From IMG/VR virus record IMGVR_UViG_3300047445_000186, positions 62,001 through 126,000 of that record: a stretch of DNA of 64,000 nucleotides, one strand, 5' to 3'. Below the pieces are notes generated by a model. It made no database searches and was not told where the DNA came from. It was given only the letters and a program-made list of their open reading frames with translations. This document shows, in pieces, positions 21,520 through 44,342 of this stretch. A program made the position numbers and the translations under genes. Each line of letters opens with the position of its first letter. Within the stretch, counting starts at the first letter, position 1.

Positions 21520-23215
21520 AGTCGCTGAATCCCGCACCGAGTTCGTTTCCTTCCGCGTCGACGGCGGCTGGCTCGCGGATTTCGCTCGCACCCGTCTCGA
21601 AGAAGGCGCGTGGGACCGAGCTCTCTCGCTCTTGACCGACTCGCTCGATGGCCTGACGACCGATCAAGCGGTCGCGATCTTGAAGGGTGAAGCCACCCTC
21701 ACTGGCGACTCGAGCGACAAGGAAGGGATCGGGTACAAGGTTCTCCCGAAGACCGGCAAGCTCGCGAAGAAGATGCAAGATCGCTTGGACTACATGTACG
21801 GGAACATCTTCCGTCGTGGTGACGAGCTCTGGAAACCGTACGCCCTCGTGTCGGGCTGGGACAAGGAGGACTGGCACTTCGCGAACAGCTTCAAGGGCAC
21901 GTACCGCATGGAAGGCGTCCGCGACGACAAGTACCTCGCGGGTCTGCGTTCCCTGTACTACGCGAACGATCCGAACAAGGACATGCTTCTGCGAATCGCC
22001 GAGCGCTGGGTCGGTGATCAAGTGATCGCGGATGTCCTGTGCGAACGCGTGAAGGGCATGCCACCGTTCTGGTACAAGGTCAGTACGAACGATCCGAAGA
22101 AGTTCATCGAGGAACGACTGAACAAGCGTGGACTTCCGATCCGTGGCGCCGTGTTTGGCAGCAAGGGCGAGATCACGAAGTACAGCAATCAAGATCTGAA
22201 GCCTGAAGACATCACGGCGCTCGAAGCCGCGCGATCAATCGAAGAGAAGGCCGACACGATCGCCCCACCCACGCTCTTGAGCGACAAGGGCGAAGACGCG
22301 ATGAACGACATGGCGGCCAAGGACCTGTTCGCCGAGCTCCTCGCGACCACGACTTCGTACCTCGTGTCCGCACCGACCGACTACGCGGAACTTCGCGAGA
22401 TGGATCGCGTGTTCGAGAAAGGCGTTGACACCCTGCACCGTCATGCCACGGGCGATCAGTGGGAGATGATCGACGAGCTTCGCAAGAAGTTCAGCACCGA
22501 GCGAGAACGCATCCTTGGCGATCAAGTCCGCGCACAAGCCGACGAACATGGTGGTTGGCTCGAACTTCCGCTGATGTATAAGGGGAAGCCGTACACGAAG
22601 CAGCGCACATTGCGAGTGCCGAAGAATCCGTTCCTGTACTGGTCGCTTCGGTACTTCAACTTCGAAGATCATGGTCACGCGAAGCCGCACTGGGACTTCG
22701 TCGCCGGCTCTGGCCACAAGATGATGAACGACGATCCGTACCACACGGACTGGATGCTCGGTGCTGGTGTTCCGCTTGACGAGGCGTACAGCCACGAAGA
22801 CGGCAGCTTCGGTGAGATCGTTCGCTCGAGCTCGTACGAGTTGAAGAACAAGCTTGTTCGAGAGTACACGGGCCATGCGTTCACGACGCTGACCAAGGGC
22901 GACAAGACGTACATCTCCGGTGAGGTCGTATTCCCGAAGCCGAACGAACGAGTTCCGACTGGTTCAATCGCGATCGTGCCGCATGCCGGCCCAGAGTACC
23001 AGCTCGCCATGGAGTCTGCGAACATGGAAAGCCTCGAAGGATATCGTGGCTGCATCATCTGCGAAACTGGCGGAAAGCTCGCGCATCTCGTGGTCGTCGG
23101 TCGAGAGTTCAAGTGCACCGTGTTGATGATGCCAGGCGCAACGAAGATGTACCGCAAGGGTGATCGGGTCTCGATCGACCTGAATGAAGGTACGATCACG
23201 AATCAGATTTTCTGA
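21512..23215 (+). CDS. large protein with C-terminal phosphohistidine swivel (PEP-utiliser mobile)-like domain
   Basis: C-terminal IICETGGKLAHLVVVGREFKCTVLMMPGAT...GDRVSIDLNEGTI matches T-x-x-GG-x-x-x-H-x-x-x-V-x-RE-x-G-x-P...G-x-x-V-x-VDG-x-x-G. Confidence 0.75.
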   Translation: MSEVAESRTEFVSFRVDGGWLADFARTRLEEGAWDRALSLLTDSLDGLTTDQAVAILKGEATLTGDSSDKEGIGYKVLPKTGKLAKKMQDRLDYMYGNIFRRGDELWKPYALVSGWDKEDWHFANSFKGTYRMEGVRDDKYLAGLRSLYYANDPNKDMLLRIAERWVGDQVIADVLCERVKGMPPFWYKVSTNDPKKFIEERLNKRGLPIRGAVFGSKGEITKYSNQDLKPEDITALEAARSIEEKADTIAPPTLLSDKGEDAMNDMAAKDLFAELLATTTSYLVSAPTDYAELREMDRVFEKGVDTLHRHATGDQWEMIDELRKKFSTERERILGDQVRAQADEHGGWLELPLMYKGKPYTKQRTLRVPKNPFLYWSLRYFNFEDHGHAKPHWDFVAGSGHKMMNDDPYHTDWMLGAGVPLDEAYSHEDGSFGEIVRSSSYELKNKLVREYTGHAFTTLTKGDKTYISGEVVFPKPNERVPTGSIAIVPHAGPEYQLAMESANMESLEGYRGCIICETGGKLAHLVVVGREFKCTVLMMPGATKMYRKGDRVSIDLNEGTITNQIF

Positions 23216-36336: not shown

Positions 36337-36710
36337 GTTGTTGGTTGGTTGTTTTCTTAGGTTGATCTCGCCAGAGTGATGACCTGGCGAGCGAAGGGCA
36401 GAAGAGGTACGGGTACTCCAGCCGTATTCCTTCTGCCCTTCTTCTTTGCTCGGGTCCGGGGTGACCTCCGGACAGTGTATAATTACCATGTTAAGCGATG
36501 TTTCAATGACCCGGTCAGACCGGCCGGGAAATGAAACCTTTAGTTTACTTTTTGAAACCTGATCACTTTTAAAGGCGGAACCCGAGTAAATTTGGTGATA
36601 CATCCGGAAACGTCCTTCGGTTAGAGTACAATACATCTACAGCGTCGAGTAATAAGAGACAAGAACGCTGCAATAAAACTACATTTTTTGGACGAGGTTT
36701 TTTGAAAATT

Positions 36711-37662: not shown

Positions 37663-37716
37663 TCCCTGTCTCAGGACGACGGCGCCGCGCTAGATAAATA
37701 CAATTACCCTAAGCTA

Positions 37717-37762
37717 GAGCGATAGACGCTCTCAGCATCAACAGCCAAACGAGGAGCTCGCC
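37717..37762 (+). promoter_or_regulatory. conserved leader motif of NAD salvage genes, copy 1
   Basis: GAGCG-ATAGA-CGCTC hairpin, then CGAG-GAG-CTCG over the SD; shared with 42833-42875. Confidence 0.65.
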
Positions 37763-38932
37763 ATGGCATCGAAAACAGACGTCACCGTCTACATCGGAAG
37801 GTTCACGCCTTTCCACTTGGGTCACGCGCATGTTCTGCGCCAAGCCCTGAACAACTCCAAGCTCGTCATCGTTCTGCTCGGTTCGGCTTATCTGGCGCGA
37901 TCACTGAAGAACCCCTTCACGTTCATCGAACGTCGCAGGATCATCGAAAGCTGGGTCTCGGCCGAGATCATGGCCGGCACGATTCCGCACGACGCCGAAA
38001 TCCACTTCGCTCCGCTCCGCGACTTCACGTACAACAACGCTCTCTGGATCCGCAATGTCCAGGAGAAGGTGAAGACGATCGTTCGCGATGTGGCACTCCG
38101 TACGAATCAAATCCTGACCGACATCCGTGTCACTGGTTCGGATCGCGATGAATCGACCTGGTACCTGAACGCGTTCCCGCAATGGAAGAAGGCGCTGGTC
38201 GAAACGTTCCGTCACGACGGTACCGGCGATCTGAGTGCGACCGAAGTTCGTGAACTCCTGTTCTCCGGCCGGGCCATGGAGCCGGGCGTTGCTGAACGCC
38301 TGATCGCGATGCTCCCACGTACGACCTATGAATGGCTAGTCAAGTTCGCCGACTCACCAGAACACTTCCGGTTGGCACGGTGGTACGAACAGAACAGAGC
38401 CTATAAGGAAGCCTGGTCGGTTGCACCGTACGCCCCGATCTTCACCACGGTCGATGCCGTGATCGTTCAGTCCGGTCACATTCTCGTCGTCGAGCGCGGA
38501 GCTGAACCGGGCATGGGGCTCTGGGCTCTGCCTGGCGGATTCCTGAACACGAATGAACGGCTGCGTGATGGCGTTGTCCGTGAAGTTCTGGAAGAAACTG
38601 GGCTGCGCCTCGCTGACGGCAAGAAGGCGAAGGAGATCACGGAAGACATTCTGAAGAATTGCATTCGTGAACAGGAAGTGTTCGACGCTCCTGATCGCTC
38701 GATGCGTGGTCGAACCATCACGCACGCGTTCTTCATTCGTCTCGATGACACGAAGCCGCTCCCCAAGGTGAAGGGACAGAACGCGCCACTGCACGAAACT
38801 GGTGGTGTCGCCGAAGTCGAGACTGCGAAGGCGTTCTGGCTGCCAATCAACGAAGCTCTGAGCCGCTCGGAGATGTGGTTCGAAGATCACCACGCAATCA
38901 TCGAGACGATGATTGGCGGAAAGGACCTGTAA
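37763..38932 (+). CDS. nadM: bifunctional NMN adenylyltransferase / ADP-ribose pyrophosphatase (NadM-NUDIX)
   Basis: IGRFTPFHLGH (HxGH), SLKNPFT, SATEVR; Nudix box LPGGFLNTNERLRDGVVREVLEETGL; FEDHH. Confidence 0.95.
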   Translation: MASKTDVTVYIGRFTPFHLGHAHVLRQALNNSKLVIVLLGSAYLARSLKNPFTFIERRRIIESWVSAEIMAGTIPHDAEIHFAPLRDFTYNNALWIRNVQEKVKTIVRDVALRTNQILTDIRVTGSDRDESTWYLNAFPQWKKALVETFRHDGTGDLSATEVRELLFSGRAMEPGVAERLIAMLPRTTYEWLVKFADSPEHFRLARWYEQNRAYKEAWSVAPYAPIFTTVDAVIVQSGHILVVERGAEPGMGLWALPGGFLNTNERLRDGVVREVLEETGLRLADGKKAKEITEDILKNCIREQEVFDAPDRSMRGRTITHAFFIRLDDTKPLPKVKGQNAPLHETGGVAEVETAKAFWLPINEALSRSEMWFEDHHAIIETMIGGKDL

Positions 38933-39264
38933 TGCTGATCTACCTCGCTGCTCCGTACAGCAACGTCGAAGACAAGGACGAGCTGATGAAGAAGATCATG
39001 ACGTACTCAGGTGCGTACATGCTCGAGAACAAGGGCTCGCACATCGTGTCGCCGTTGTTCAATCACTACTCGCTCGAGCATGTGCCTGAGCTCGGTGGAA
39101 CGTACGAGTTCTGGGAAGCGTACTCGGCTGAACTGCTGGGTGTCTGCAGAAAGATGATCGTGCTCACTCTGCCTGGCTGGACGAAGAGCAAAGGCGTGCA
39201 GTCCGAGATGATGATCGCGAAGTCGCGTTCCATCCCGGTTGAGTTCGTCGAACTGTGTATCTAA
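38932..39264 (+). CDS. DUF1937-like / nucleoside 2-deoxyribosyltransferase-fold protein
   Basis: IYLAAPYS...SPL...LPGWTKSKGVQSEM. Confidence 0.75.
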   Translation: MLIYLAAPYSNVEDKDELMKKIMTYSGAYMLENKGSHIVSPLFNHYSLEHVPELGGTYEFWEAYSAELLGVCRKMIVLTLPGWTKSKGVQSEMMIAKSRSIPVEFVELCI

Positions 39265-39312
39265 AAGGTAAGATTCGGACCTTCCTAATCGAATCAAAAC
39301 TGAAAGAAGAAA

Positions 39313-39987
39313 ATGAACTTTCCTGGTGGCAACAAATTCATGGACCGTATGTTCCGCAAGGCTGATGGCGTTGTGTGGGACCTGATGAGCGGCAAGATCG
39401 GCGTGCAAACGTCGGAAGGTATCGCAACGATCGCCGGTGAAGGCGACGACGCGCAGATCACGCTGAACGTGATGGACGAATTCGGCCTGGCTCTGCCAGC
39501 GTTCGCCCAAAGCACGCCAGTCGCGTCGATCAACGTCGGCGACATCATCTACCGCGGCAAGCGCGACAACGTCTCGTTCGTGATCGGCAAGACCGACAAT
39601 GGCAAGTTCAAGGTGATGAGCACCGATGGTGTGACCTCCACCTGGACTCCTCCGAAGGTCGCGATGCTCGGCTTCGAAACTGGCGTGATGGTTCTCCGCT
39701 CGCTGGCCACGATGCTGCCGAACGGCGACAAGGGTCTGGGCGCAATGCAGAACATGCTCCTCCCAATGATGATGATGGGTGGCGGCGAACTGGGCGGCGA
39801 CATGGAAAGCATGCTCCCCCTGATGCTGATGTCCCAAACCAATGGCGGCGACGCTGGTGGCATGGGGAACATGATGCAGACCATGATGATGATGAAGATG
39901 ATGAAGGGCGACGGCGGTTCCCTGTTCGGCGGCAGCTCGAAGAAGTCGACTTCTGAAAGTGGCCGCACCCCTTTCTACAAGGGCTGA
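39313..39987 (+). CDS. hypothetical protein with Met/Gly-rich C-terminus
   Basis: Strong codon bias; MLPMMMMGG repeats. Confidence 0.85.
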   Translation: MNFPGGNKFMDRMFRKADGVVWDLMSGKIGVQTSEGIATIAGEGDDAQITLNVMDEFGLALPAFAQSTPVASINVGDIIYRGKRDNVSFVIGKTDNGKFKVMSTDGVTSTWTPPKVAMLGFETGVMVLRSLATMLPNGDKGLGAMQNMLLPMMMMGGGELGGDMESMLPLMLMSQTNGGDAGGMGNMMQTMMMMKMMKGDGGSLFGGSSKKSTSESGRTPFYKG

Positions 39988-40082
39988 CCGAAGACAGCAG
40001 CGCTAGCGAGAAGTACCACACAGGTCTCCGATCGCTAAGCGCTGCGGAAAGCCAAGCACTGTCAGACATCAGGATTGTAGGC

Positions 40083-40484
40083 ATGCGGTTCTATCCAGGA
40101 TCGTTTGATTCTCTGATCCGAGCATCGCGCTCTCCTGACACCATGATGACCCGGTTATACTTGGTCTCGGAAGTGAACAACAAGTATGATCAACATGCTG
40201 TGATGGTTCACGATGGTGAAAGAAAGATCGCAAGTGTTTGCGCAGAAGATGCACCGAAGGTTCGAGCACTGCTTGAAGCATGGCGAACCGAAAGTTCATC
40301 GGATGATGTGCTGGTTTGCTCGATTGAATATGTCTCTGAAGCGTTCAACGCGGAGAAGTTGTTCAGAAACCGCGGTACTTTGAAAATCCGCGGTCGTCAT
40401 CGAGTGAATGAGCGCCTTGCTCGCAAATACGTCAAAGAGCGTGGTAATCGGATCGATCCGAAAACGTTCGAACTAGTTAACTGA
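40083..40484 (+). CDS. hypothetical protein, possible HIRAN-like
   Basis: YLVSEVNNKYDQHAVMV...IASV resembles the HIRAN EPxNxYDxxAVxV motif. Confidence 0.65.
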   Translation: MRFYPGSFDSLIRASRSPDTMMTRLYLVSEVNNKYDQHAVMVHDGERKIASVCAEDAPKVRALLEAWRTESSSDDVLVCSIEYVSEAFNAEKLFRNRGTLKIRGRHRVNERLARKYVKERGNRIDPKTFELVN

Positions 40485-40494
40485 AGGAAGAAAA

Positions 40495-41400
40495 ATGGGA
40501 AACGCACGTTGGGATGACAGAGCGTACAAGTCGTACGCTGATACCACGAACTACCGCAGTGCAAGCATCGACAAGGTGTTCTCGCACAAGGTGAATGAAA
40601 AGCTCGATCCGCGGAACGTGAAGGTCGGCAAGGGCGATCGCAAGGGTCTGCAGCTTCGCGAGTCGATCATCAGCGAAGAAAATCCGAATCCGACCCCGAT
40701 CATTCTCGGTCTGGACGTCACTGGTTCGATGGGCCAGGTCGCTGAGCAAATCGCGAAGGACGAGCTGCCGACGCTGATGACGAAGATCCATGAAACTGGC
40801 GTCGTGACTGATCCGCACGTGATGTTCATGGGGATCGACGACGTGTTCGCTCAAGGTCATGGTGCTCTGCAAGTCTCGTACTTCGAGCCTGATCTGCGGA
40901 TCGTCGAGCAGCTGCGGAACATGTGGCTCGTCAAGAACGGTGGCGGGAACGGTTCCGAGTCGTACGACTTGGCCTGGTACTTCGCTGGTCGGTACACCTA
41001 CCTCGAAGGCTTCGAGAAGCAAGATCGCAAGGGCTTCTTGTTCACGTTCGGTGATGAGCCTGCACCGTTCCAAACTGTCAGCCCCGGTCATCTGGAGCAA
41101 ATCTTCGGCCCTGGCGACTACGAATCAACTGCACCTGCAGTGAGCCTGAAGTCGGCACAAGCGAAGTACCAAGTGTTCCACATCGTGGTTGAACGCAGCT
41201 CCAGCAGCCGCTCCCTGCGCAAGAGCTGGACGGATCTGCTCGGCAATAACGCGATCTTCCTGCGCGAAGTGGAGTTCCTGACTCCTGTCGTTCTTGCAAC
41301 GATGGCAATCGCGAACGGCGCGAACATCCAAGACGTGATCGCTGAAAGTGAATGCCCTGCTGAACTGCGGCACGCATTCGCGAACGTGCTGGGTGAATGA
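40495..41400 (+). CDS. vWA domain protein
   Basis: MIDAS-type GLDVTGSMG, MGIDD, GGGNGSESY, FTFGDEP. Confidence 0.88.
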   Translation: MGNARWDDRAYKSYADTTNYRSASIDKVFSHKVNEKLDPRNVKVGKGDRKGLQLRESIISEENPNPTPIILGLDVTGSMGQVAEQIAKDELPTLMTKIHETGVVTDPHVMFMGIDDVFAQGHGALQVSYFEPDLRIVEQLRNMWLVKNGGGNGSESYDLAWYFAGRYTYLEGFEKQDRKGFLFTFGDEPAPFQTVSPGHLEQIFGPGDYESTAPAVSLKSAQAKYQVFHIVVERSSSSRSLRKSWTDLLGNNAIFLREVEFLTPVVLATMAIANGANIQDVIAESECPAELRHAFANVLGE

Positions 41401-41555
41401 TGCTCGAGTACAAGATCGCTGCGGGTACCAGCATTCGTGAGCTGGAAATAGCGGTCCAATTCTGGCTCGATCTCGGATGGTCACTGCAAGGTGGTGTCGG
41501 AGTTGGGCCGTACTTGTACCAAGCTCTCGTTAAAACCAAAACTGAAGAAGTGTAA
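41397..41555 (+). CDS. small DUF1737-like protein (52 aa)
   Basis: Not in track; YKI...LEIAVQFWLDLGWSLQGGV...YQALVK; ATGA and TAAATG coupling. Confidence 0.7.
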   Translation: MMLEYKIAAGTSIRELEIAVQFWLDLGWSLQGGVGVGPYLYQALVKTKTEEV

Positions 41556-42782
41556 ATGTCTGGCTCTACTGTTGCAGTTATCGGTGCGAATTTTGGTGAT
41601 GAAGGCAAGGGCCTGATCACTGACTTCGAAACCCGTCGTCTGAATGCGAAGCTTGTCGCGCGCATGAATGGTGGAGCTCAGGCAGGACACACGGTAGTCA
41701 CCACCGAAGGAGACCGGCATGTGTTCGGTCACTTCGGTGCTGGCACCTTTGCAGGTGCTGACACGTACCTGCCAGCCACCTTCCTTGTGAACCCTCTCGT
41801 TCACGAAAAGGAAAAGAATACCCTTGGCGCGAGAGCTACAAGAACGTTCGTACATCCACATGCACCTGTCTCGACGATCTGGGACATGGCATTGAATGCG
41901 ATCGTTGAGCTCTCGCGCGATAAGCCACATGGCTCTTGCGGCCTTGGCATCAATGAGACCGTGACTCGCACTATTGCTGGGCACGGTATTCTGTTCAACA
42001 TGCTGAAGACTCAGACGGTCGAGCACGTTGCTGGTGTGATGAGCCTGATTCGTCGTGACTGGATTCCAGAACGGATCAAGAGCTTCGGCATCGATTTCAA
42101 TTCGCATAGTGATCAGCTGCGTGCAAAGCTTGAGCCGATGCTGAACGTGCTGAATGACCTCGACTTCATGCGACACGCCCAGCGGCTTGTCGATGCAGCC
42201 GCTGGTCTTGAACTCGGTCAGCCGACGATTGAAGGCAATCTTGTGATTGAAGGTGCGCAAGGCTTGCAGCTCGATCAAGACCTCGGAATCTTTCCGCACG
42301 TGACTCGTTCGATGACGGGCCTCGGATCGGCGATCGTGACTGCGAATGAACTTGGCCGCAAGAGTGTTCAGCCCGTGTACATCACGCGTTGCTACCTGAC
42401 TCGCCATGGTGCAGGGCCACTCGAGCACGAGAAGATTCGATTCACTGAGCAGAAATTGTTCGATCAGACTAATCAACCGAATCAATGGCAAGGTACGCTT
42501 CGGTACGCACCACTGAATCTCGTGCAGCTTGAAGACTTCATTCGCCGCGACTGTGTGCGTGGTGCTGAATTCGCCAGCCGCATGAAGATCGAACTGGAGC
42601 AGCCAACGATCGCGGTCACGTGCCTCGATCAGGTCGGCTCTGAGATCTCGATGTTCGGCGCAGATCAAGAATTAGTCACGATCCCGACAGAGAATGCAGC
42701 TAGCTACATTGCAGACACGTTGAAACTCAGGTTGAGCCACTCGTCCCGCGGCCCATCTGCTGCTGACGTGCAGTTCATGTAA
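41556..42782 (+). CDS. purA: adenylosuccinate synthetase-like protein (divergent PurA)
   Basis: GANFGDEGKG, NGGAQAGHT, EGAQGLQLD, PHVTRS, YLTRHGAGP. Confidence 0.88.
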   Translation: MSGSTVAVIGANFGDEGKGLITDFETRRLNAKLVARMNGGAQAGHTVVTTEGDRHVFGHFGAGTFAGADTYLPATFLVNPLVHEKEKNTLGARATRTFVHPHAPVSTIWDMALNAIVELSRDKPHGSCGLGINETVTRTIAGHGILFNMLKTQTVEHVAGVMSLIRRDWIPERIKSFGIDFNSHSDQLRAKLEPMLNVLNDLDFMRHAQRLVDAAAGLELGQPTIEGNLVIEGAQGLQLDQDLGIFPHVTRSMTGLGSAIVTANELGRKSVQPVYITRCYLTRHGAGPLEHEKIRFTEQKLFDQTNQPNQWQGTLRYAPLNLVQLEDFIRRDCVRGAEFASRMKIELEQPTIAVTCLDQVGSEISMFGADQELVTIPTENAASYIADTLKLRLSHSSRGPSAADVQFM

Positions 42783-42797
42783 AATTGATCTATTGAA

Positions 42798-42875
42798 GAG
42801 GTGTGCCGAAGACCTCAATGAACTTCGGCAGTGAGCGATAGACGCGAGCTAAGAAAAGTAGAGGAGCTCTACCAA
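42798..42875 (+). promoter_or_regulatory. structured leader of NAMPT gene, leader motif copy 2
   Basis: GAGGT/ACCTC and TGCCGAAG/CTTCGGCA overlapping pairings; GAGCGATAGACGC; GTAGAG-GAG-CTCTAC hairpin covering the SD. Confidence 0.65.
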
Positions 42876-44342
42876 ATGTCACAAAGAACCGCAGCAGAAT
42901 TCCTGGCCCCGAAGGCCACGGACATCAAGTACACGCACGACGATCAGCTGATCATCAGCCTGATCTGCCGTACCGACTCGTACAAGTTCGGTCACCCGTT
43001 CGCATACCCCGAAGAAGTGAAGGGGATGTCCTCGTACGGCGAAGCCCGTGTCGATCGGAAGACCACGATCATTCCGTTCGGAATGCAGATCCTCGTGAAG
43101 AAGTTCCTCACGCAACGGATCACCATGGCGCACATCGACGCTGCTGAAGCATTCGCGCTCGCTCACTTCGGCCGCCCTCTGTTCGCTCGCGCTGCCTGGG
43201 AAAAGGTCGTGCAAGTGTACGACGGCTACCTGCCCCTGATCATCCGCGCAGTTCGCGAAGGTACGAAGATCACCGGTGGCCTGCCGATCTACAGCGTGAC
43301 CTGCCTCGACGAAGACCTGTTCTGGATGTCGAGCGGTATCGAAACGCTGATCCTTCGCGGTATCTGGTACCCGACGTCGATCGCGACGATGGACAACTCG
43401 ATCAAGCGCGAAATCAAGCACTACTACGAAATCACCGGCGCAGACATGAATCTGCTCCCGTTCTCGCTGCACGACTTCGGTGGTCGCGGTGTGACGAGCT
43501 CGGAGCAAGCTGAAATCGGTGGTGCAGCGCACACCGTGAACTTCATGGGTTCCGACACGGTCGAAGGCGTCCTTGCGGCGAACTTCTACTACAAGCACGC
43601 AATGACTGCGTTCTCGGTGTTCGCAACCGAGCACAGCATCGAATGTTCGTTCGGTGGTGGTCGTGAAGACGCACTGCGGTACATCCGCCAAGTGCTGAAG
43701 AACGCGCTCCCTGGCTCGATCGTTTCGTTCGTGCTTGACGGGTACGACGTGTACCGTGAAGCCGAGCTGGCCTGCACCGTGCTGCACGACGAAATCCTGG
43801 CGACGAACGCGAAGGTCGTGTTCCGCCCTGACAGCGGCGACATGATGGAAGTCGTTCCCCGCATCCTGCTCCTGCAAGCGAAGTGCTTCGGCACTGTGAA
43901 GAACTCGAAGGGTTTCCTGAAGGTGAACACCGTCGGCATTCTGCAAGGCGATGGCGTTGATCACCTTGCGATCACCTCGCTGCTTGGCAAGCTCCTGACC
44001 ATGGGGTTCTCTGCTGACAACGTCGTGTTCGGCTCGGGTGGTGCTCTCCTGCAGAAGGTCAATCGCGACACATTCAAGTTCGCACAGAAGGCCTCCGCTG
44101 TTCTCGTGAATGGCGTGTGGAAGGGTATCGCGAAGGATCCGATCACCGACCCTGGCAAGAAGTCGAAGGAAGGCATCCTCACTACCGTGCGTTCGCGCAT
44201 GACTGGTGAACTGATGGCTGCTCGCCTCGATCTGGCGCCGCTGAACGAAGAATTCGAGGACCTCCATGTCCTGGTTTACTACTACGGTCAGCTGTACAAC
44301 GAGACCACGATGGACGAAGTCCGCGAACGCGCAGCAGTCTGA
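42876..44342 (+). CDS. nadV: nicotinamide phosphoribosyltransferase
   Basis: TDSYKFGH, LHDFGGRG, ATEHS, SFVLDGYD, VFRPDSGD, LQGDG, FGSGGALLQKVNRDTFKFAQK, KDPITDPGKKSK. Confidence 0.96.
   Translation: MSQRTAAEFLAPKATDIKYTHDDQLIISLICRTDSYKFGHPFAYPEEVKGMSSYGEARVDRKTTIIPFGMQILVKKFLTQRITMAHIDAAEAFALAHFGRPLFARAAWEKVVQVYDGYLPLIIRAVREGTKITGGLPIYSVTCLDEDLFWMSSGIETLILRGIWYPTSIATMDNSIKREIKHYYEITGADMNLLPFSLHDFGGRGVTSSEQAEIGGAAHTVNFMGSDTVEGVLAANFYYKHAMTAFSVFATEHSIECSFGGGREDALRYIRQVLKNALPGSIVSFVLDGYDVYREAELACTVLHDEILATNAKVVFRPDSGDMMEVVPRILLLQAKCFGTVKNSKGFLKVNTVGILQGDGVDHLAITSLLGKLLTMGFSADNVVFGSGGALLQKVNRDTFKFAQKASAVLVNGVWKGIAKDPITDPGKKSKEGILTTVRSRMTGELMAARLDLAPLNEEFEDLHVLVYYYGQLYNETTMDEVRERAAV

Follow-up and report, generated by a model that had tools for sequence, protein, structure and literature searches.

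A conserved two-hairpin mRNA leader precedes the NAD+ salvage genes nadM-Nudix and nadV/NAMPT in a giant soil phage, other phages and bacteria

In the current study, we asked whether the two NAD+ salvage genes of a giant soil phage, which lie some 5 kb apart, share a structured leader, and if so what such a leader is for. Both genes are found in the window, i.e., the whole stretch of 64,000 nt that was analyzed out of a phage genome of 331,776 bp, and each is preceded by a copy of a small two-hairpin mRNA element. The start of NAMPT was placed at ATG 42876 and not at GTG 42831 of the longest ORF, with homologues aligning from residue 1-10. The features of the two loci are as follows, with H1 and H2 denoting the upstream and downstream hairpins.

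37694-37700, + strand: promoter-like box ATAAATA, resembling a T4 late promoter, 12 nt 5′ of H1 of the nadM leader (its role as a promoter is only an inference)
37713-37767, + strand: nadM-Nudix leader, whole element, upstream of nadM-Nudix
37713-37736, + strand: H1 of the nadM-Nudix leader, with 9 bp of stem interrupted by a single bulged C and capped by the pentaloop ATAGA at 37722-37726 (minimum-free-energy fold, covariance-model matches, covariation)
37737-37749, + strand: linker of the nadM leader, G-poor and A/C-rich, AUCAACAGCCAAA
37744-37767, + strand: H2 of the nadM leader, with the core CGAG-GAG-CUCG (37750-37760) holding the Shine-Dalgarno (SD) sequence GAGGAG (fold, model matches, covariation)
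37763-38932, + strand: nadM-Nudix, bifunctional NMN adenylyltransferase/ADP-ribose pyrophosphatase, 389 aa (Pfam CTP_transf_like and NUDIX)
42804-42830, + strand: upstream hairpin TGCCGAAG (42804-42811)/CTTCGGCA (42823-42830), right after the stop codon of a PurZ-like gene (fold)
42830-42872, + strand: NAMPT leader, whole element, upstream of NAMPT
42830-42850, + strand: H1 of the NAMPT leader, GCG-ATAGA-CGC with its loop at 42838-42842, extended via a GA/GA internal loop (fold; model match with an E-value of 1.5e-4 over the whole genome)
42851-42857, + strand: linker of the NAMPT leader, A-rich, AAGAAAA
42858-42872, + strand: H2 of the NAMPT leader, GUAGAG-GAG-CUCUAC, with the SD in the 5′ arm and triloop, ending 3 nt before the ATG (fold)
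42876-44342, + strand: NAMPT (nadV), 488 aa (Pfam NAMPT_N and NAPRTase)

The two leaders have a 13-mer in common, GAGCGATAGACGC, at 37717-37729 and 42833-42845, and a second shared word, GAGGAGCTC, at 37751-37759 and 42861-42869. No further copy of the 13-mer was found anywhere in the window at ≤2 mismatches, and the only exact copies in the genome (331,776 bp) are those of the two leaders; neither of two single-mismatch copies elsewhere in the genome is matched by the covariance model. Exact copies of the second word on the + strand are likewise confined to the leaders, with one more on the - strand at 22334. By our own estimate, about 0.5 shared 13-mers would be expected by chance over all pairs of ~80 leaders, and about 1.5e-4 for the nadM/NAMPT pair. 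Sharing of the 13-mer alone is not very improbable; the decisive evidence is the two-hairpin architecture, which recurs with compensatory changes in homologous leaders. Both hairpins of both leaders were also recovered by minimum-free-energy folding, in which the outer helix of the nadM H2 (GCCA/UGGC, 37744-37747/37764-37767) is predicted to pair the AUG (37763-37765) as well.

Across homologous leaders, the element consists of H1, a G-poor linker of 6-18 nt and a weak H2, ~45-55 nt in total. H1 combines a freely covarying stem with a near-invariant pentaloop, A-N-(A/C)-G-A, in which the first position is A in 62/63 loops, the third A in 55 and C in 8, the fourth G in 62/63 and the fifth A in 63/63; the loop is closed by a G-C pair in 53/64. 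Internal loops of H1 occur in some members only. Linkers are unconserved in sequence and contain 7% G over 65 copies. H2 carries the SD (AAGGAG) in its 5′ arm and GAG triloop, GAU and GAA triloops being observed as well, and ends 0-3 nt before the ATG. Median predicted stabilities are -8.1 kcal/mol for H1 and -2.9 kcal/mol for H2. In the stems, 94.8% of cells are paired and double (compensatory) changes occur in 13/13 pairs, giving a covariation score of 0.93 vs. ≤0.13 for slid controls; the covariation persists in alignments that were not fitted to the model. G-U pairs exceed A-C mismatches by 51 to 14, indicating that pairing is selected on the sense RNA. No pseudoknot partner was detected for the H1 loop, the H1 and H2 loops are not complementary, and a terminator scan of the + strand found none at either leader, where H2 is followed by the start codon. 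A rare loop variant, AACGA, is present in both copies within one clade; in Xanthomonas and Stenotrophomonas, by contrast, the copies within a single genome carry different bases at loop position 2. Concordance of loops between copies is confounded by shared ancestry.

The element is exclusive to nadM-Nudix and nadV/NAMPT, with one copy per cistron, intercistronic positions included. In the phage's own genome, the covariance model matched the two leaders and nothing else, and no other gene among ~435 carries an SD hairpin of the H2 kind. Over 467 kb of phage loci from 34 phage sources, all 47 matches precede NAMPT, NadM-Nudix or a short ORF that is joined to the start of nadM, and in five complete jumbo phages matches at E<1e-3 fall only at NAD salvage genes. 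Bacterial loci (n = 80) gave 72 matches, all on the sense strand and only at nadV and nadM leaders, in Xanthomonas, Stenotrophomonas, Methylomonas and a Polyangiaceae MAG; in another match set, 68/68 were on the sense strand. A scan of 151 whole genomes of the Xanthomonas order returned 17 matches, of which the Xanthomonas match and all 15 other regions checked adjoin NAD salvage genes, and in a scan of five whole bacterial genomes matches were again limited to nadV/nadM leaders. The motif-bearing phages range from 24 to 58% GC. NadM-Nudix lies within 6 kb in 31/33 loci and is present wherever coverage allowed; the motif-bearing proteins are 339-393 aa in length, with only the two enzyme domains in Pfam and no consistent extra domain. 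No other neighbor gene is co-conserved with the motif and no dedicated regulator gene lies nearby. Departures from the full pattern are phage phiAS5, which has the complete motif on NAMPT and none on its NadM-Nudix gene, and the H2-only versions on NAD genes of phages Ps15, XacN1, Lw1, KVP40, L009, L010 and L038. TAAATA-type boxes lie 5′ of H1 in most phage nadM leaders; the ATAAATA form has 10 copies in the soil phage genome, several of them 25-30 nt ahead of ATGs. Some bacteria have separate DNA palindromes 5′ of H1. No family in Rfam 15 matches the element, and no description of it was found in the literature searched.

Most of what had been predicted from sequence alone is borne out by these results. 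A shared leader before both NAD+ salvage genes is supported by sequence, folds and wider conservation; the 13-mer is, as claimed, absent from other genes (at ≤2 mismatches in the window, and with two exact copies genome-wide); and the described anatomy, a GCG-ATAGA-CGC hairpin followed by an SD held in a stem and GAG loop, is the conserved one. Of the two checks that the prediction had named, occurrence in homologous leaders was met in dozens of phages and bacteria with strong covariation, and occurrence before unrelated genes was not seen in whole-genome scans. The element is not phage-specific, being found in bacteria too. The overlapping pairings it described in the NAMPT leader do exist in the sequence: GAGGT (42798-42802) is complementary to ACCTC (42812-42816), and TGCCGAAG/CTTCGGCA, the one of the two pairings that is also predicted by folding, forms the hairpin listed above. 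Both sit 5′ of the conserved element, and the suggested pseudoknot or switch is not part of the conserved motif. The TGCCGAAG/CTTCGGCA hairpin was not found in the other leaders compared; conservation of these pairings cannot be judged, because L005, the sole related contig that resembles the phage in this upstream region, has exactly the same sequence.

The two leaders are copies of a conserved two-hairpin mRNA leader tied to the NARP2 genes nadM-Nudix and nadV/NAMPT in phages and bacteria; its structure is established, together with its strand, conserved loop and SD placement. Its recurrence ahead of this gene pair in many other phages, and in Xanthomonas and other bacteria, makes it very likely that the leader is dedicated to the control of NAD+ rebuilding, with the caveat that regulation is inferred, without experiment or RNA data. 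The coordinated translational control originally proposed is supported to that extent. A rationale for tight control exists, in that NARP2 over-produces NAD+ and consumes PRPP, and the KVP40 operon proved toxic in E. coli (10.1101/2024.02.11.579819). The controlled step would be translation initiation. The marginally stable H2 would hide the SD, and in the nadM copy the AUG too, and the stable H1, with its invariant A-N-(A/C)-G-A loop on a G-C closing pair, would be the recognition module for a trans-acting effector. Once bound, the effector would lock the leader such that the 30S subunit could not open H2, and coordinated feedback on both enzymes would be the outcome.

The identity of the effector, for which the original prediction offered a riboswitch-like element or a repressor such as the Nudix protein, is not decided between these options. 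Our tentative preference is for a protein of the regulon itself (autogenous control), with NadM-Nudix favored and NAMPT possible; we give this reading a rough probability of only 0.35, narrowly ahead of direct metabolite sensing, and no binding data support it. By analogy, such control may resemble that exerted by PyrR, ThrRS or T4 gp43, and enzyme-bound ADP-ribose, NMN or NAD+ might modulate it. A protein is favored because hairpins of simple form whose apical loop is conserved are usually bound by proteins, because no pocket-forming junction or pseudoknot is detectable, and because NadM-Nudix and NAMPT are the only proteins to accompany the motif in phages as well as in distant bacteria. The lack of a pseudoknot partner for the loop, the unconserved linker, the absence of any other co-conserved neighbor and the AACGA loop in both copies of one clade point the same way. 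It counts against a protein effector that no RNA-binding activity is known for NadM-Nudix or for NAMPT. Spread over phages and distant bacteria with a single pathway is a classic riboswitch signature, and the motif-free NadM-Nudix gene of phiAS5, the lack of an extra domain in NadM-Nudix and the differences at loop position 2 also speak against a protein. No RNA runs containing the phage were found, leaving the protein reading without experimental or RNA support.

The closest rival is a riboswitch, in which a metabolite of the pathway (NAD+, NMN, nicotinamide, ADP-ribose or PRPP) would be bound by the leader itself and would cause the H1 pentaloop to dock onto H2 or the linker, altering access to the SD, so that NAMPT and NadM would be translated only at low NAD+ or with rising breakdown products. 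This is possible, in the absence of ligand-binding data. The element follows one pathway in Gammaproteobacteria, in a Polyangiaceae MAG and in phages whose GC content runs from 24 to 58%, a spread that argues against a host-specific factor; invariant unpaired nucleotides stand next to freely covarying stems; an SD in a weak hairpin that needs extra stabilization is a typical OFF-switch expression platform; and a nearby dedicated regulator gene is absent. Two generic features of riboswitches are present: conserved structure with covariation upstream of functionally coherent genes (nadV/nadM only), and an expression platform (the SD in H2, 0-3 nt from the ATG), the functional consequence of which is inferred. 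Guanidine-II shows that a riboswitch can be built from two hairpins joined by a variable linker. Against this reading, merely ~4 unpaired bases outside the SD are invariant; there is no junction, internal loop or pseudoknot able to form a pocket for a dinucleotide, H1 internal loops being confined to some members and the H1 and H2 loops lacking complementarity; and nothing resembles the NAD+-I or NAD+-II classes. It is possible that the element is a new riboswitch class that senses NAD+, or ADP-ribose, nicotinamide or NMN, directly. If so, the riboswitch classes linked to NAD+ metabolism would number three, and phage counter-defense genes would have their first; a phage could sense NAD+ depletion by host immune NADases (Thoeris, SIR2, DSR, SEFIR) and translate its NAD+ reconstitution pathway only when needed, and bacteria would apply the same switch to salvage homeostasis.

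The remaining explanations fare worse. An effector-independent element, in which H1 would be a stabilizing or processing hairpin at the 5′ end of the cistron's message, the linker a ribosome standby or S1 site and H2 a device fixing low translation, would yield the two enzymes in matched amounts with nothing being sensed. In its favor, H1 is stable and in nadM leaders lies directly 3′ of the promoter-like TAAATA boxes, the linker is unstructured and G-poor, and the H2-only versions on NAD genes of several phages indicate that H2 can function without H1. It is nonetheless unlikely: no specific loop would be needed for stabilization, but across the 63 loops A1, G4 and A5 hardly ever vary, in contrast to stems that change completely, and a general tuning device would not be limited to two genes per genome. 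Phages might instead exploit the site of a global host RNA-binding protein (CsrA/RsmA, Hfq, ProQ or an ANTAR regulator). A typical CsrA target has two hairpins 10-30 nt apart, the second over the SD, with GGA in or near the loop; ANTAR targets are dual adjacent hairpins whose hexaloops have A1 and G4, the second overlapping a terminator. These likenesses are outweighed, as such a protein should have many targets per genome, whereas whole-genome scans give NAD genes only, and the hosts come from distant phyla; we consider this very unlikely. None of the 63 H1 loops has G at position 3, and H1 therefore has no obligatory GGA. As a CsrA/RsmA target the element does not qualify, with GGA in H2 only, as part of the SD; nor does it as an ANTAR target, with loops of 5 and 3 nt, a 6-18 nt linker and no terminator-like T-run. 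Finally, the element could act at the DNA level, as a hairpin promoter or as a palindromic operator read by NrtR or another transcription factor; this is suggested by the inverted repeats upstream of NAD genes and by NrtR control of nadM-nadV or prs-nadV in other bacteria (PMC2330246). It is strongly disfavored: the stem sequences covary rather than being conserved, G-U outnumbers A-C (51 vs. 14), all 68 and all 72 matches are sense-strand, copies occur within operons right against the start codon, and the DNA palindromes of some bacteria are separate and 5′ of H1. An intrinsic terminator or attenuator (GC-rich hairpin plus U-tract) is not present on the + strand at either leader.

Among known systems, the PyrR-binding loop (RF00515) is similar in being a leader hairpin with a purine-rich apical loop, in several copies per operon with one per regulated unit, and in its binding protein from the phosphoribosyltransferase world; the autogenous hypothesis is modeled on PyrR, which binds in a nucleotide-dependent way. 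PyrR recognizes ARUCCAGAGAGGYU (PMC7430163), and 1/65 loops of the new element is AGAGA. Unlike the new element, which has no terminator and sequesters the SD, PyrR uses transcription attenuation (anti-antiterminator/terminator), and it belongs to the type I PRTases, NAMPT to type II. The PyrR site model (purine-rich internal bulge plus UCCAGAGAGG) gave no match in the whole genome at E≤10. Guanidine-II (mini-ykkC) likewise has two small hairpins with covarying stems, a variable unconserved linker, conserved bases confined to apical loops and translational control beside the SD, and shows that minimal RNAs can be riboswitches. However, both of its loops are ACGR tetraloops that kiss via C-G pairs, whereas the new element has an A-N-(A/C)-G-A pentaloop and a triloop that is the SD itself, without complementarity and in another gene context. 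Lacking an ACGR tetraloop on each hairpin and any Rfam match, it is not a member of guanidine-II. NAD+-I (nadA motif) and NAD+-II (pnuC motif) are also cis-regulatory leaders of NAD+ supply genes, for which the same feedback logic would be expected, and NAD+-II also controls SD access. Their architectures, tandem bulged stems and a pseudoknot with internal loop and triple helix, respectively (PMC10085692), are unrelated to the new element, and they occur on nadA and pnuC in Acidobacteria and Streptococcus. Neither model matched either window leader, the best phage copy or the Xanthomonas leaders at E≤10. NrtR regulates nadM-nadV or prs-nadV through a sensor that descends from a Nudix domain able to bind ADP-ribose, the domain also present in NadM-Nudix (PMC2330246); that paper mentions Xanthomonas, Stenotrophomonas and phage 0 times each. 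NrtR, a winged-helix protein, binds conserved palindromes in promoter DNA, whereas the new element is a structured RNA whose stems covary and which lies at the ribosome binding site. The element is not such a conserved, strand-independent palindrome, with its covarying stems and sense-strand restriction. Phage translational operators (the MS2 coat-protein hairpin, T4 gp43/RegA and lambda boxB) share with it a short hairpin at or near the ribosome binding site, a variable stem and few invariant loop bases, which in their case are read by a phage protein. They are limited to one phage group and differ in loop sequence, whereas the new element is also found in cellular genomes and always with metabolic genes.

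Both NAD+ salvage genes of the source phage, a jumbo phage with a 331,776-bp genome (~55% GC; estimated completeness, 94%), are preceded by the same structured leader, one copy lying before nadM-Nudix (37713-37767) and the other before NAMPT, or nadV (42830-42872). The leader consists of a first hairpin (H1) with the pentaloop A-N-(A/C)-G-A and a second hairpin (H2) that holds the Shine-Dalgarno (SD) sequence and abuts the ATG. The window corresponds to bases 62001-126000 of the IMG/VR record. The two enzymes constitute the phage pathway named NARP2 (10.1101/2024.02.11.579819). The genes of the region are as follows.

37763-38932, + strand: bifunctional NadM-Nudix (Pfam CTP_transf_like and NUDIX)
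38875-39264, + strand: DUF1937 / nucleoside 2-deoxyribosyltransferase-like gene, between nadM and NAMPT
38875-41400, + strand: three-gene cassette between nadM and NAMPT, comprising the DUF1937-like gene, a 224-aa ORF and a 301-aa ORF (phrog_2971, function unknown)
41556-42782, + strand: PurZ-like adenylosuccinate synthetase homologue, 408 aa (PHROG 2-aminooxy adenylosuccinate synthetase, E 3e-47)
42876-44342, + strand: NAMPT (Pfam NAMPT_N and NAPRTase)

The interval from nadM to NAMPT holds the DUF1937-like gene, three unknown ORFs and the PurZ-like homologue. The three-gene cassette is common to 8-9 related loci, and 8 related phage loci retain the PurZ-like gene next to their NAD genes; it is conceivable that the phage makes 2-aminoadenine (Z) DNA or otherwise rewires purine metabolism. 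Upstream, at 36384-36453, lies a long, almost perfect hairpin whose sole matches were to miRNA models at chance level, on both strands, and which probably acts as a terminator in both directions or is a structured intergenic element of some other kind. Near-identical DNA was confined to rhizosphere metagenomes, and the run search returned the phage from DNA runs only, with zero RNA runs; 86-99% of the region's sampled words were present in runs from several different rhizosphere studies. No megablast match to the region was found among cultured phages. A second contig (L005, IMGVR_UViG_3300046615_000261, 234,547 bp) carries an NAMPT and leader that are 100% identical, and therefore represents a repeat assembly of the same phage or of one nearly identical to it.

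The two leaders share the 13-mer GAGCGATAGACGC (at 37717 and 42833) and GAGGAGCTC (at 37751 and 42861). No further copy of the 13-mer was found in the window at up to two mismatches, and the only exact copies in the whole genome are those in the two leaders. By our estimate, ~0.5 instances of a 13-mer common to some pair among ~80 leaders would be expected by chance over all pairs, and ~1.5e-4 for this specific pair. Since such sharing alone is not very improbable, the case for an element rests on comparative evidence. The original prediction had additionally described two further pairings in the NAMPT leader, GAGGT/ACCTC and TGCCGAAG/CTTCGGCA, as compatible with a pseudoknot or switch. Both are present in the sequence, and the latter is also predicted by the fold. 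The pairings are situated 5′ of the conserved element, and other leaders show nothing equivalent. The region is better regarded as a local hairpin that follows the preceding gene and stands outside the switch.

An NAMPT-based scan of viral contigs yielded 37 loci with protein identities of 41-100%, most of which showed the same architecture when their leaders were inspected by eye: H1, a short linker, and then H2 abutting the ATG (e.g., GATAAG-GAG-CTTATC). The H1 stem differs in nearly every phage sequence, and the pentaloop reads ATAGA, ACAGA, AAAGA, AACGA or AGAGA. Because MAFFT alone lost the register of one or other hairpin, a covariance model was seeded from six copies of equal geometry and iterated (seed, n=6; R2, n=29; R3, n=65 sequences). 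When both strands of 467 kb of phage DNA were searched, R2 gave 47 matches, all of them on the gene-sense strand. Forty-five immediately precede the ORF of NAMPT or NadM-Nudix; the remaining two are each followed by a small ORF, its stop overlapping the start of NadM-Nudix. These two small ORFs (L014:3945-4277, 110 aa; L037:4483-4893, 136 aa) are mutually unrelated, and neither reaches the curated cut-off of any Pfam family. One NAMPT leader (L020) has a motif visible by eye that was missed by the model filters. The two-gene pattern originally noted therefore recurs in most phage loci with both genes in range. Most phage nadM leaders also have a TAAATA-type box 5′ of H1; in the source phage, an ATAAATA box resembling the T4 late promoter TATAAATA occurs at 37694-37700, and others are found at genome positions 76678, 194238, 199369, 207406 and 303674, 25-30 nt before several phage start codons.

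Among the cultured phages examined, whose NAMPT proteins are at most 44% identical, the full motif was found only in Aeromonas phage phiAS5. Ps15, XacN1, Lw1 and KVP40 (L046, L047, L049 and L051) have only the H2-type stem-GAG-stem SD hairpin, without a canonical H1, before NAMPT and/or nadM, and neither the full motif nor the H2-type hairpin was found in Mx1, CcrSwift or Bajun. In the nadV leader of Vibrio phage KVP40, H1 is replaced by a GAGAC/GTCTC hairpin, whose loop measures 10 nt and which is followed by the linker ACACAAUCAAGC.

Within the source genome, R2 at E<=10 detected the two leaders and nothing else. The score of the nadM copy is low (19.9 bits), which we attribute, as a likely inference, to its longer linker and an H2 core of only 4 bp. 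No other ORF among ~435 has its SD in a stem with a GAG triloop right before the start codon. Occurrence of the motif before unrelated genes genome-wide would have refuted the prediction; whole-genome scans were searched for it, and strong matches were confined to NAD-gene leaders, including those of five complete jumbo-phage genomes (343-455 kb). In the 455-kb phage, a third, weak copy is also present (L160:1501-1551; G156:C1:265215-265265; R3 E=0.035), preceded by a TATAAATA box and ~100 kb from the NAD genes. Its H2 lacks a following start codon, the nearest downstream ORF (296 aa) beginning ~60 nt further on; the copy may have decayed, or it may mark a small RNA or a short gene that escaped recognition. 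A Parcubacteria match (L118), with no NadM and no adjacent start, and two weak matches in genomes G157 and G159 were excluded from our claims as ambiguous.

The motif is also found in bacteria. A scan for NAMPT relatives in one genome per prokaryotic species gave 80 loci, in which R2, and then R3, detected the motif. The 72 R3 matches are all on the sense strand and fall at two positions only, just before nadV and ~1.1-1.2 kb upstream, just before nadM. Carriers include Xanthomonas, Stenotrophomonas, Tahibacter, Aquimonas, Luteimonas, Marinicella, Methylomonas and other Methylococcaceae, and a Polyangiaceae MAG (576-kb contig); the Xanthomonas leader reads CCGGCGG-ACAGA-CCGCCGG ... GCGAAG-GAG-CUUCCGU-C-AUG. 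Whole-genome scans of five motif-bearing bacteria returned NAD leaders only. Among 151 sampled genomes of the Xanthomonas order, 17 matches were obtained in 16 genomes at E<=0.05; the Xanthomonas match is the nadV leader of locus L055, and the other 15 regions (16 matches) all have NAMPT or NadM-Nudix immediately downstream (15/15). The element is therefore not phage-specific and travels with the nadM/nadV gene pair. Some bacterial nadM leaders have DNA palindromes just upstream of H1 (L127:1808-1837, AGTAGTGT...ACACTACT; L123:1825-1854, CTTATGCT...AGCATAAG), which may serve as transcription-factor operators in addition to the RNA element.

In 68 aligned copies, 94.8% of stem cells were standard pairs vs. 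57% in shuffles, 13/13 stem pairs had changed on both sides, and the covariation score was 0.93 vs. <=0.13 with partners slid by 1-3 columns. As this alignment had been fitted to the model, the counts were repeated on unfitted ones: H1 was 90% paired in a loop-anchored gapless alignment (score 1.0 vs. <=0.17), and H2 was 95% paired in a MAFFT alignment. The stems contain 51 G-U pairs vs. 14 A-C mismatches, an excess that, together with the all-sense-strand matches, indicates that selection acts on the structure in mRNA rather than on duplex DNA or antisense RNA. Independent minimum-free-energy folding recovered both hairpins in each of the two window leaders, in one phage copy and in one from Xanthomonas. 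The median energy is -8.1 kcal/mol for the stable H1 and -2.9 kcal/mol for the marginal H2. The linker is 6-18 nt long with just 7% G, GC-rich hosts included, and shows no conserved motif beyond this G depletion and a weak UCA(A/C) tendency. Reverse complements of the pentaloop, sought as pseudoknot partners from 60 nt upstream to +30, were no commoner than with loops swapped between sequences.

Base composition of the H1 loop and its closing pair
Loop position 1: A 62/63
Loop position 2: U36 C15 A11 G1
Loop position 3: A55 C8, G never
Loop position 4: G 62/63
Loop position 5: A 63/63
Closing pair: G-C 53/64

Four features are established, namely the structure, the strand it occupies, its placement on the SD and start codon, and the presence of one copy per cistron. 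Some intercistronic copies directly follow the nadM stop codon, and neither sigma-70 promoters nor intrinsic terminators were detected at the two window leaders. Placement, strand and per-cistron copies point to translation initiation, rather than transcription, as the step controlled. The coordinated translational control originally proposed is consistent with structure and placement, but that the element regulates at all remains an inference. Because H2 alone is weak, exclusion of the ribosome would, we infer, need a factor that reads the invariant H1 loop; the opposite, a factor of this kind that admits the ribosome, is also possible. Its spread over phages and distant bacteria implies a factor not specific to one host, and the restriction to NAD targets in each genome one that is not a global regulator.

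As to the effector, a protein of the regulon ranks first, although with a probability of only ~0.35 and no binding data. NadM-Nudix lies within 6 kb in 31/33 phage loci, no other gene is co-conserved, with no regulator gene found within 6 kb across phage loci, and a rare AACGA loop is common to both copies in one clade. Hairpins of simple form with a conserved apical loop are, moreover, usually bound by proteins. Ranked just below is direct binding of a metabolite by the leader, i.e., a riboswitch, for which binding is likewise only inferred. This possibility is favored by the distribution of the element, a classic riboswitch pattern, and by Guanidine-II as a structural precedent, but no pocket-forming junction or pseudoknot was found. 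An effector-independent element that stabilises and tunes expression is unlikely, being weakened by the invariant loop. Recognition by a global host protein is less plausible still, since GGA is never present in H1, and a DNA operator can virtually be dismissed, given selection in mRNA.

NARP2 allows phages to rebuild NAD+ after NAD+-depleting immune systems fire, and it is costly: PRPP is consumed, NAD+ is over-produced, and the KVP40 operon proved toxic in E. coli (10.1101/2024.02.11.579819). No description of its control was found in the open-access literature searched. A dedicated RNA element on each NARP2 gene offers a concrete, testable handle on pathway control, with a range that takes in rhizosphere jumbo phages, the cultured phage phiAS5 and the chromosomes of Xanthomonas and Stenotrophomonas. 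It also closes a gap in bacterial groups with nadM-nadV operons that the NrtR study does not list. Bacterial copies occur in genetically tractable plant-associated species, and an X. campestris NAMPT deletion mutant and complementing clone exist (PMC10907753). The element would represent either a riboswitch class that is new and minimal, or a new example of a metabolic enzyme that doubles as an RNA-binding repressor.

The element belongs to none of the families tested. Rfam 15 at permissive E-values gave only chance-level matches for the 9-kb region, each leader alone, the best phage copy and the Xanthomonas leaders (miRNA models, DicF, and Mu-gpT-DE at 9.4 bits vs. a gathering score of 49). 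Searches of the open-access literature for a nadV/NAMPT riboswitch or motif, an NAD-III class or NARP2 regulation found no description of it, nor does such an element appear in the NrtR regulon study, the NARP2 preprint, the Breaker-lab 50-genome survey or the X. campestris NAMPT study. The PyrR family, whose loop was compared on the basis of a review, had no match in the phage genome. In function, the likeness is to leaders that sequester the SD, whether riboswitch-like or operators of the PyrR/MS2 type.
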